From Ascoidea asiatica JCM 7603 (Eukaryota > Fungi > Ascomycota), in the NCBI GenBank assembly GCA_001600695.1, contig BCKQ01000004.1:879843-943842 (forward strand): a stretch of DNA of 64,000 nt. The letters are read 5' to 3'. This document shows, in pieces, positions 10,202-29,710 of this stretch (its first letter is position 1; each line of letters opens with the position of its first letter). Made by a program: the position numbers and the translations under genes. The notes under the pieces are model-generated. The model made no database searches. It had not been told where the DNA came from and saw only the letters and a list, made by a program, of their open reading frames with translations.

Positions 10202-10644
10202 TTCACTTTTCTTTTATATTCAATCAATATTTTATCAATATTATAATAATTAAAACAACTTTATTTTCATTTTTTAAAGAATTATAATAAACATATTATA
10301 ATATTACAATGTTTTTTATATTTAAAATTTAATATTTTAATCACATGTCCGGGATTCTCGGATGCTATCTCGTAAAGCAACTCGAGCATTCAAGTTCGCA
10401 CTGACATGCATGAAGGATAACCTTAATTAACCTTAAGTTTCTTATTTTTTGTTTTTATTTTTCTATATTTGATTGCTATGTTTCATTATTTAATTGCTAA
10501 TTTTTATAGCAATTTAAATATTTGAAATTGAATATTTATTATATGAAAAAATTTATATAAAAAAAGTATTTTCACTTAAAATTTTTTAATTATTTTTTTT
10601 TATTTAAAATATAAATTTATTTATCATTAATAAATAACTTCAAA

Positions 10645-11059
10645 ATGTCTACTGATACACTTGTGGTTATTGATAATAAAACTTCAAATTCAAATTCAAA
10701 TTCAAATAAAACAGGATTTACATATGATATTGATTTAAAAACTGTTCAATGAAAAAACTCAAAATGCTTATAAATTATAAAATAATGCTTTACATCCAAA
10801 TCGTACTTTGAATGATTTAAAAAATTTTAAAAATAGTTTAGAATCCAATGATAAATGTTATTTTTTTACACCAATATTTTATAAAAATTAACAAAATAAA
10901 TTTATTGATTTTCTTAGTTTATTAAATTCTATAATTGAATTTGGTGAAAATTCTTCAAATTCATATGTATTTAAAATTTATATTCATTCAATTTTAAAAA
11001 GTTTTTATTTAAACATAACAAATTTTTATAATAATTTATTAGAATATATTCTTTCAATA
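10645..11059 (+). pseudogene. disrupted N-terminal part of the family gene (one frameshift, two in-frame stops)
   Basis: ATG 10645 (MSTDTLVVIDNK...); frame change near the A-run at 10737-10741; then in frame with ORF 11060 but with TAA at 10778 and 10889 where copy 2 has TTA and CAA. Confidence 0.75.
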
Positions 11060-11749
11060 ATGGAAGGAAGAGCTAATATTTCAAATATAGATCAGGATTT
11101 ACAACAAATTTTTTCTAATTTTTTTTCTACAAATTCATTCCATATAAATTCTGAAATTTTTCAAGATTTCTATTGTTCCAAATTAAGTTCTTCCTTTAAA
11201 GAATTATATCCCAATTTAGATAAATACTCAAAAAAAACTTTCATGAATACTTTAGGTATAATATTTGCACTTGGTAATAATTTACCTAATATGTTTGGAT
11301 GTGATTATTTAATAAAGCTTCAATTTAGTTTTCAAAATTTATTTGATAACATCAATCTTTTAAAAATTGGTAATACAAAATTTTCAAATATAGTTGAATC
11401 AATAAAAAAAACTGAAATGACAATTAAAGAATTAAAAGAAAATAAAAATGATGTGAAATACTACTATTACAATTATCATAATTCAAAATATTTAGGTATG
11501 ATTGCCATTTCAATAAGTAGATTTAGTTCAAACGTTCAATTAACTTCGGCTTCAAAGTTCGATTATAAAAAGGAATGTTTCTATTTTTTTCCTTATAACA
11601 AAGTTAATAAAATAAAAGATTTGGAGAGTATACTTCGAAAATATGTTCCAGTTCCTTATAAAAGGTCAGATTACACAGAATTACGTATTTACGATAAAGA
11701 ATATTTTCCAATCAATGCTGCTACATTTTTCCGTTATCAAGATTGTTAA
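11060..11749 (+). CDS. unknown lineage-specific family protein, copy 1 (open 229-codon 3' part)
   Basis: Clear paralogue of 19518-20222 (69 of the first 94 residues identical by hand count); may be the remnant of a longer gene. Confidence 0.55.
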   Translation: MEGRANISNIDQDLQQIFSNFFSTNSFHINSEIFQDFYCSKLSSSFKELYPNLDKYSKKTFMNTLGIIFALGNNLPNMFGCDYLIKLQFSFQNLFDNINLLKIGNTKFSNIVESIKKTEMTIKELKENKNDVKYYYYNYHNSKYLGMIAISISRFSSNVQLTSASKFDYKKECFYFFPYNKVNKIKDLESILRKYVPVPYKRSDYTELRIYDKEYFPINAATFFRYQDC

Positions 11750-12037
11750 ACCTGTTTTTAGCTAAAAACTATTTAAAATCATTTTTTTTTATTTGAAATA
11801 CTTTATACATATTATATAATATGGTTGTTAATTAGGTTAAAGTTAATAAATACCATTTGATTTGTAACTACCCTTCCGTACACTAAGTAAGACCCTTGTA
11901 AAAGCAAAAATGCTATTTCGAGGTTTCCGGCAATGTAGCACGTGCTGTTGCTGTTCTTGCGCGAAAAACAGGAAATTAAAAAATGCATTTTCGTTATTTT
12001 CGTTATTTTCGTGATTTTCGTGATTTTCAAGCCTGCG

Positions 12038-28600: not shown

Positions 28601-29000
28601 CTCAGATAATGATAATAAATCAAATTTAATTACTGATGAAAATTGCCAATCTCAATTAGCCTTAAATTCTAATTTTCTTTCAATTTCTTCTTCAAATTCA
28701 ATACTGAATTCAGAGAAACATTTAAGCGTGAATTCAAGTATGAAATCCGATTCATATGAAGAAATTTCGCCAGTTTCTGAAAGAAATAGTATTATATCTA
28801 TAAGAAAACTTGGAATTATTGATGATCATGATAAATTTCAAAATAATAAAGATAATTTCATTGATTTCAGTGATACTAATTCTCTTAAGGTGAATCATGA
28901 AATATCTATTGATACTAATAAAGATATAATAAATGATGGATCGGAAATGAATAGCTTATTCAATGCAATTGATGTTGTTTTAAATGATTTACAAAACTAG
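25689..29000 (+). CDS. STE5: pheromone MAPK scaffold Ste5-like (RING-H2, PH, vWA-like; Ste5/Far1 family)
   Basis: CNFC..EKIINLNCGHSTHENC..FPICSIC RING; GNLRLVDKLQIS and EKWGVALCDSDFIF resemble the Ste5 PH domain more than Far1. Confidence 0.75.
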   Translation: MDPSPSKWRLSQRFNSPSHNNINNNILNNVNDRDKSPLSINSLNSLNSSNSSSSLDSNINSNLNLNSNLNSNSNSQNSSLNKKYFKKFNKKIHSNNYNNSKNIINSLDFSNLKETKIQISSNNKNNLINNNPINNNNNLNYSKVKYLRNKKRSSYYHNNNNLLSSDTLNTSNISINSINSNNSSNSINSNNENIKILKNLKICNFCNEDLDITFNIEKIINLNCGHSTHENCLKTCIEDNKILNIINNNTTTNNNINNNINLIFPICSICQKTAIPKLNYYLDHFITLYLLFEPNSNSIQYQSQLQLQSQSQQLSNQVSKSPISNISTKINDNKSINTHNSNNSRNSIQSLQSLQSFQSIPSIKSNVSISNNSINNNRFSINSKLSQSSFKSNRTNNSIRNNSIKFNHHDNKSSRGSSISAISSIVSSVSRNSTPPQSPLNSNFNSNLINLSINKIQSIFLNYLLNQLNLNFSKRLNLLSILEFKNFGNLRLVDKLQISLNSSDNYNLKLLYLFKKILIIIDLNFKNYKILPLNNSSDFNNNNELNLNSIIDENGKINKNLNSNNNNNNDNSSNDDFFDPSSHHFNSNSFSSLKIETPTSKTLKWDINYKDINFIYISHHDIKNVLEKWGVALCDSDFIFPNKIFSTTLTLPSHYFNSSEPSPSSLSFPVINDFDYDDLEKSIEKIKINDEDKNKNKNNNNTNNNKNKNLDKSDESNNVSISILNSNFNSPDSSINSNEVIENASPKASLSGNKKQEDINEFQNKSEIIDITINKSPKYLLFIFNTENNLEIETQSLLINMIRALSMKMKNIYIIGTKNNFNEIHLKGFLNQNLNLNELGQINETKFIDSDFNLIINEEISPNIENLESEFAAIFLSSDHISNSPKINLIKNQLFLEITNFQDSSDSFKRNSFITKNLSIVPSWDSLMETICNKFNISFDDDYDSDSDSDSESDSETNSDSDDNSNSINCISDNDNKSNLITDENCQSQLALNSNFLSISSSNSILNSEKHLSVNSSMKSDSYEEISPVSERNSIISIRKLGIIDDHDKFQNNKDNFIDFSDTNSLKVNHEISIDTNKDIINDGSEMNSLFNAIDVVLNDLQN

Positions 29001-29349
29001 ATACCCATAATCTCAAATTTACTAGCTTTTTTAATAAGGACTTTTTTGCTTTTTAATTTAATTGTTTTTCTTTTGTTTTTTTTTATTAAAAATACTTTTG
29101 TACTCTGTTTTTTTGTTTTTACTTTTCTCATGTATTTTTTCTTCGCTTTTGTTAATTAGTTTATTCGCTTTTTTTTTTTTTTCTGTTTTGTTGTTTAATT
29201 TTTTTATTTAAGCTTTTTTTAAAGCTAGAGTGGACTCTAATAAATAAAATAATCCTTTATTATTATGTGATATATGCTAGAGTAAAAGTAGTTAAAAAAA
29301 TTTAAATTTTAAAATAATATAAATTAATTTGTAAATTCAAGTGATTTTT

Positions 29350-29710
29350 GAATTCTCCAATTATATCTCGTAAAATTATCAAGTTTAGTATTTAAGTTTG
29401 TATTGGCATGCAAGAGGAAAAACCTTAATTAACCTTAAAATTCTTATTTTTAATTTTTAATTTTTATATTTTTATATTTTGATTGCTAGATAATAATATT
29501 TATTCAAATCGTCTTGTTGAGGATATAAAAATGATGTTAGATATTATTATTACAATTATTATGTGACATTATTTTTAGATATGATTGGAATTTCTGTAAA
29601 TCGATATAAATTAACAGTTCCATTAACTTCATATTCAAAAATTGTTTATTGAAAAAATAAAAACCAATCATATTTTTGTCACATTCAAATCGGAATAAAC
29701 ATACAAGAAT
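29350..29710 (+). pseudogene. dispersed family copy 3, heavily deleted (leader joined to a C-terminal coding fragment)
   Basis: Leader core at 29421-29438; 29527-29631 reads KNDVRYYYYNYYVTLFLDMIGISVNRYKLTVPLTS versus copy 1 KNDVKYYYYNYHNSKYLGMIAISISRFSSNVQLTS. Confidence 0.8.

Follow-up and report, generated by a model that had tools for sequence, protein, structure and literature searches.

The 64,000-nucleotide stretch of the Ascoidea asiatica JCM 7603 genome analysed here (hereafter the window; contig BCKQ01000004.1, positions 879,843 to 943,842) carries three members of a dispersed gene family that occupies at least 21 loci genome-wide, each with a conserved leader and the remnant of one gene of about 370–420 codons. 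The family very probably consists of lineage-specific chromosomal genes read by RNA polymerase II (Pol II), each made of a promoter block, a TATA-like box, a single uninterrupted open reading frame (ORF) and a short 3' tail, and spreading by DNA duplication. Overall, it is best read as an orphan birth-and-death family under conflict-type selection, with a function that we infer; we give this reading a probability of about 0.5.

The window corresponds to C4:879843-943842 of a 20.3-Mb, 71-contig assembly (contigs are labelled C1, C2, and so on); it has a GC content of about 22% and genes of yeast type. The genome was searched with leader, protein, whole-unit, profile and N-terminal queries, all of which converge on the same loci. 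The locus count is a lower bound, as only the best-scoring candidates were evaluated per search. For broken copies, the pieces were searched separately, breaks were masked or written X in calculations, the family alignment was frameshift-aware, and about 1.5 kb of flank was compared per locus. The initial annotation of the window had proposed a dispersed family from its three local copies, and this is borne out by the loci found elsewhere. Eight of the 21 lie on C4, and the three C11 copies form a clade. Distinct loci number 20, since the C61 copy repeats C4:1.02M except at N positions and one base, and is probably an assembly redundancy of C4:1.018–1.022 Mb. Two loci fall within an inverted duplication on C13 (~89.3–92.2 kb and ~111.2–114.1 kb), 99.9% identical over at least 2.9 kb; a broken family copy and a partial host ORF lie on each arm, and about 19 kb separate the arms. 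None of the 21 loci holds a full-length intact copy (one, at C4:682 kb, contains an 855-N gap), and the genome searches, including those with profile and N-terminal queries, returned no more distant paralog or parent gene.

The leader presents, in order, the word TCACATG, CTCGTAAA, and a tandem 18-mer, AACCTTAATTAACCTTAA, which is exact in 13 of 21 loci. Allowing at most one mismatch, the 18-mer has 22 matches in the genome, 18 of them at family loci, against 5 for the reversed control; it is thus essentially confined to the family, and it is almost fixed across a tree of 3.3 substitutions per site. A TATA-like box, similar in most copies that retain the region, lies about 75–100 nt before the conserved ATG. 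Because of its position and constraint, the leader looks like a Pol II promoter, not the end of an element, and its presence at all 21 loci agrees with the earlier suggestion that the unit spreads together with its own promoter. For one exact 18-mer, at C3:1257864-1257881, none of the searches found a family ORF nearby; it may be what remains of a leader, or may match by chance. In eight copies, a GTATGT-like word follows the 18-mer by about 10 nt and hints at an intron in the 5' untranslated region, but the TATA-like box lies downstream of this word. The ORF, which in the C1 copy is uninterrupted apart from one stop, encodes a low-complexity start, a helical middle and a better conserved alpha/beta C-terminal domain of about 110 residues. 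Beyond the stop codon, homology fades within 60–90 nt. Neither end of the unit is fixed, and the end alignment proposed in the initial annotation shows gradual fading with no common terminus.

The three window copies sit where they had first been placed (about 10345–11775 on the forward strand, 19495–20593 on the reverse strand, and 29350–29710 on the forward strand), with E-values to 1e-64 and below in sequence comparison, well outside what chance would give. Copy 1 opens with a promoter block at 10341–10520 (TCACATG at 10341–10347, CTCGTAAA at 10369–10376, the 18-mer at 10419–10436), followed by a putative TATA-like box at 10554–10562, some 90 nt before the first ATG. As annotated, its gene of about 367 codons can be read from ATG 10645 to TAA 11749 only if a frameshift near 10745 and two in-frame stops (TAA 10778–10780 and TAA 10889–10891) are bridged, all three within the broken 5' coding half (10645–11059); about 16 codons present in other copies are missing. 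From a conserved internal Met, a frame of 229 codons stays open (11060–11749) and ends in the alpha/beta domain (~11430–11749), and a shared 3' tail of ~60–90 nt (11750–11830) fades without a defined end.

Copy 2, on the reverse strand, matches copy 1 in three separate blocks, which implies the two internal deletions that had been described: the leader (10348–10517 = 20594–20422, 84% identity), a second block (10748–10939 = 20409–20217, 88%), and a third (11030–11730 = 20252–19549, 82%). It lacks the TATA box, the first ATG and two internal blocks. Its promoter block (20422–20594, with the 18-mer at 20502–20519) adjoins the deletion that removed the TATA box and the first ATG; a remnant of the 5' coding half (20223–20409, with TAA 20338–20340) is left between the two deletions, and an open 3' frame of 234 codons (19518–20222) starts at the same internal Met as in copy 1. 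Copy 3, on the forward strand, joins a leader (29352–29471, 77%; promoter block to 29490, 18-mer at 29421–29438) to a C-terminal fragment (29525–29656, 73%, fading by ~29710) that contains stops and frameshifts. The deletions had been called progressive, a description that does not hold: the deletions are not nested, their breakpoints differ, and in the tree copy 1 has copy 2 as its sister while copy 3 stands apart on a long branch.

The family spread by segmental duplication of DNA from resident loci, along with the promoter and scraps of neighbouring genes. Flanks of varying length are common to some copies, and four copies carry broken pieces of the gene next to a donor locus; three donor loci were identified. 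Beside window copy 1 lies a POF1-like gene (ORF 9332–10201, reverse strand), which is single-copy in the genome. Its 5' end and upstream DNA (10073–10340) left relics upstream of two C2 copies: at C2:1.88M, at least 22 codons with a stop (z 23, tblastn E 5e-5), and more weakly at C2:0.91M (z 8.7). These relics mark the copy 1 locus as the donor of both C2 copies, and show that the copy 1 site was occupied before the C2 copies diverged. Likewise, the 3' half of a major facilitator superfamily (MFS) transporter gene neighbouring C11:0.32M recurs broken beside C11:0.48M (E 2e-33), and the end of a RanBP1-domain gene neighbouring C13:0.11M recurs with a deletion beside the C7 copy (E 6e-22). In each case one locus has the host gene intact and the other has it broken, so that both the direction of duplication and breakpoints outside the family gene can be read. 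A further flank of ~0.9 kb is common downstream of the C4:1.02M, C3 and C11:0.22M copies (65–85%, no clear ORF; piece L022:1-1400).

How the copies lived and died is recorded in their coding sequences. Every copy carries between 1 and 9 lesions, and the counts are overdispersed (p 7e-4), which indicates staggered deaths; simultaneous death of all copies is rejected at the same p value. Protein identity is 40–65% for most pairs of copies. Selection was estimated with simple codon models (F1x4/F3x4), applied to AT-rich, partly dead sequences, on the seven copies with the fewest lesions. The ratio of nonsynonymous to synonymous substitution rates (dN/dS) is 0.58, below 1 with a 2dlnL of 35, and 0.45 in the C-terminal domain, again below 1; the branch model gives 0.55 on inner branches and 0.77–0.99 on terminal branches. 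On those terminal branches (length 0.08–0.25), codons 181–413 show 1 stop, where 35.8 would be expected under neutrality. Site model M2a is preferred over M1a (2dlnL 24, p 6e-6), with 13% of sites at a dN/dS of 3.0, 26% at 0.09 and 61% at 1. Since frames were kept open while amino acids changed at a near-neutral rate, and since the site model agrees, these results suggest mixed constraint and diversifying selection. The unit had been said to decay quickly; instead, the copies lived long, with frames open over 0.08–0.25 substitutions/site, and broke recently. The birth-and-death turnover that had been put forward as one option fits well, given purifying selection on the duplicates (dN/dS 0.55–0.65), overdispersed lesions in pseudogenes of different ages, the donor–daughter pairs and the fast protein evolution. 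The trees of the 5' and 3' parts differ, which is compatible with copy 1 as an old donor, and does not amount to a demonstration of gene conversion.

The 3' half has a history of its own in some copies. In six of them, two of which are window copies 1 and 2, the lesions are confined to the part upstream of the conserved internal Met, and about 230 codons are open; one of the six has lost this Met, with another Met a few codons on. The position is ATG in 11 of the 13 copies that cover it. Of the 9 lesions in the seven least-broken copies, 8 fall upstream of the internal Met (p 6e-4, or p 0.013 when the three at codons 97–104 are set aside, in a post hoc test), while the two halves have the same density of lesions when all copies are counted (17/1366 versus 47/3732 codons). 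The 5' half was itself under purifying selection (dN/dS 0.57), and in copy 2 seven ATGs precede the internal Met. The six copies might still make a short product from the internal Met, which is a minority possibility. The 5' excess may reflect a short product that was kept, early lesions that were favoured, or 5' DNA prone to slippage.

As far as the searches made reach, the protein family is new, while the kind of system is known. No family match was found in Pfam, PHROGs or NCBIfam, and no relative by word-indexed protein search (with the whole piece and a C-terminal profile), by HMMER against 1.84 billion representatives, in ESM Atlas features or PDB sequences, or in viral, metagenome and bacterial contigs, phages and plasmids; since exact look-up does not find even the window's own housekeeping proteins in the protein collection, such blanks show no more than a lack of annotated relatives. 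A match to a known housekeeping or transposon protein, the other outcome that could have spoken against an unrecognised family, was therefore not obtained. The fold comparison suggested in the initial annotation was run with two low-confidence models, of mean pLDDT 46 (~70 in the C-terminal domain) and 49; Foldseek, VIA, Atlas and BFVD gave nothing significant with them, the best rows reaching Z 5–6 on generic elements. Papain-like or transglutaminase-like, RWD and PH-like folds came up repeatedly, though weakly (Z ≤4.4). No invariant Cys or His that would support an enzyme is present across copies. The protein is basic, with at most one moderately hydrophobic segment (best 19-residue hydropathy 1.0–2.0).

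Two candidate identities found no support. For an RNase III or double-stranded RNA-binding domain (dsRBD) protein of the Rnt1 or Dicer-like type, including a dead RNase III, the PF14622 matches are at other loci and the hhalign probability to E. coli RNase III is 0.1%; no dsRBD appears among the fold rows of the low-confidence models. Three RNase III-domain loci were seen (C30:27873-30861 and C3:1307981), two of them ~21–24 kb from the C30 family copy and unrelated to it. A KilA-N/APSES domain has a similar order of strands and helices, but PF04383 matches elsewhere, and the fold searches, made with weak models, list none.

The sequences show that new copies arise by ectopic duplication of DNA, with breakpoints that vary and in many cases within one contig, and take along the promoter with or without part of a neighbouring gene; each copy then stays in place, its frame open, as its protein changes, and is finally broken by stops, frameshifts and deletions, at a time that differs between copies. 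The product would act inside the cell by binding rather than by catalysis, and would take part in a genetic conflict, either as a driver or suppressor or by opposing retroelements, plasmid toxins or a competitor; each copy would be useful only while its target lasts. Given the gene architecture and the spread by duplication, a conflict-type role is slightly favoured, and a meiotic driver specifically is improbable. Several points weigh against the conflict reading. A family still in use would be expected to have intact copies, and none was found; some lesions could be assembly errors or confined to one allele. With simple codon models on AT-rich and partly dead sequence, uneven rates or alignment errors can pass for positive selection, and the analysed copies were picked for few lesions; relaxed selection is a real alternative. 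With neither homolog nor fold, the role is read from the evolutionary pattern alone.

The initial annotation had offered an unknown mobile element with deleted derivatives as its other option, here taken as an element whose internally deleted copies retain both ends, or as cargo of one. This would explain why the 18-mer is found at every locus while the 5' coding half is less often retained (59–68%) than codons 181–380 (83–97%), the tandem repeat resembles subterminal transposase sites, and dN/dS is near 1 on terminal branches. Nevertheless, a discrete mobile element would not predict neighbour-gene relics, and four copies have them; breakpoints fall within neighbouring genes, the copies have no ends in common and form no young cluster other than whole-segment duplicates, and resident frames stayed open far longer than dead-on-arrival insertions permit. 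The absence of a transposase, reverse transcriptase or integrase motif and of terminal inverted repeats (TIRs), noticed earlier, was upheld by Pfam, profile and fold searches and by a terminal-repeat test, and each class of element was considered in turn. Inverted matches at the 21 loci occupy no consistent position and score at shuffle level; long terminal repeats (LTRs) are not indicated, as the loci have neither shared terminal dinucleotides (TG...CA) nor direct terminal repeats above shuffled controls. Nor is a retrocopy or non-LTR element, as there is no poly(A) tail and the upstream block is retained in 21 of 21 loci. A Helitron lacks support, with no common 3' end in the alignment and no Rep/helicase match, hairpins not having been scanned separately; so does a Crypton, with no tyrosine-recombinase family match and no invariant R-H-R-Y set; and DDE transposases gave no Pfam, profile or significant fold match, the Hermes rows (E 0.05, Z 3.5) being at noise level. 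A mobile element is, therefore, very unlikely. Another reading, which concerns origin and is compatible with the conflict reading, is that the family descends from a viral, linear-plasmid or bacterial gene that the yeast acquired, placed under a promoter of its own and multiplied; the protein is an AT-rich orphan without a parent gene in the genome, and nuclear copies of linear-plasmid genes in budding yeasts (PMC11848437) give a precedent. Such a capture is extremely unlikely, as PHROGs, the viral, metagenome and bacterial contigs, phages, plasmids, BFVD and the 1.84 billion representatives yielded no match, and GC content at third codon positions (GC3, 0.16) is close to that of the host (0.10).

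Two other readings accept resident genes. An ordinary dispensable orphan family (e.g., a condition-specific regulator or adaptor), duplicated under weak purifying selection and now being lost without any conflict, would account for the broken state of all copies and for the majority of sites at a dN/dS of at most 1 (the 26% and 61% classes of M2a). It is a minority possibility, opposed by the site class at 3 (p 6e-6) and by open frames on branches with dN/dS near 1, because under relaxed selection stops should be tolerated no less than amino-acid replacements. In a spore killer of the wtf poison/antidote type, the first ATG would start a long product and the internal Met a short one, and copies without a 5' part would persist as single-function genes. 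The dispersed and locally clustered copies, shared promoter, many pseudogenes and fast evolution recall such a system, as do the 5' position of lesions in the least-broken copies and the conservation of the internal Met, and the host is described as a heterothallic diploid (PMC6692504). The protein, however, has no multi-pass membrane character, the ORF has no intron, lesion density is equal in both halves over all copies, the test for 5' bias was post hoc, and copy 2 has its seven upstream ATGs, which together make such a killer quite improbable. The analogy with wtf drivers drawn in the initial annotation, thus, holds for the pattern, fails for the protein features, and remains an analogy as regards drive. 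To our knowledge, no wtf-type killer meiotic driver family has been described in budding yeasts. It is unlikely that the present genes are a selfish or conflict family of a new protein type there, perhaps a poison/antidote system that resembles wtf and makes a long and a short product, in which full-length forms die and the short form is kept.

All three copies had been described as lying between conserved housekeeping genes, which is borne out in part: the POF1-like cytidylyltransferase-family gene, MSH6, the JmjC gene and mS26/PET123 were identified as neighbours in the window, and for two other neighbours, ORFs 21595–24516 (973 aa) and 25689–29000 (1103 aa), searches of Pfam and PDB gave nothing significant. 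The start of the POF1-like gene lies ~140 nt from the copy 1 leader (window 10201–10345); the two may share one bidirectional promoter, which could help to retain this leader. A tRNA-Gln(CTG) gene lies ~230 nt upstream of the C2:0.91M leader (piece L003:1903-1974), and apart from it no structured RNA and no shared tRNA or 5S flank was found across copies. Elsewhere in the window, two tandem mitochondrial-carrier paralogs (6041–8808) are 76% identical over 300 nt, the second, an ORF without a start, probably having an upstream exon; a 72-nt intron at 32615–32686 is the only canonical GTAAGT...TACTAAC...TAG case in the window scan.

Some 20 dispersed orphan copies have a promoter motif of their own, bear signs of diversifying selection and have recently been broken throughout, which makes the family a good candidate for genetic conflict. 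If no conflict is involved, it offers a clear record of gene spread by ectopic duplication, a process already known, with donor and daughter loci identifiable through neighbour-gene relics. Among known systems, non-autonomous DNA transposons (Ds/MITE-like; hAT, MULE, Mariner) and Cryptons (PMC7175516) resemble it in having internally deleted copies with 5' and 3' parts, whereas the family lacks TIRs, fixed ends and any transposase or tyrosine-recombinase match, and has neighbour-gene relics and long-lived open frames. The wtf genes of Schizosaccharomyces, with their segmental spread, conserved upstream region and fast evolution (PMC6526906; also PMC5478263 and PMC9562144), share ~20–25 dispersed copies, DNA-level spread, pseudogenes and, possibly, two products from one gene. 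The family differs from them by the absence of sequence similarity, multi-pass membrane segments, coding introns, a shared LTR or 5S flank, any intact member, and demonstrated gene conversion. Lineage-specific birth-and-death multigene families occur in yeasts. The present family shares with these its duplication with variable breakpoints, local clustering and staggered pseudogenisation. It differs in that each copy stands on its own between ordinary genes of the chromosome, that its protein lacks any relative or parent, and that every sampled copy is broken although frames stayed open until recently.

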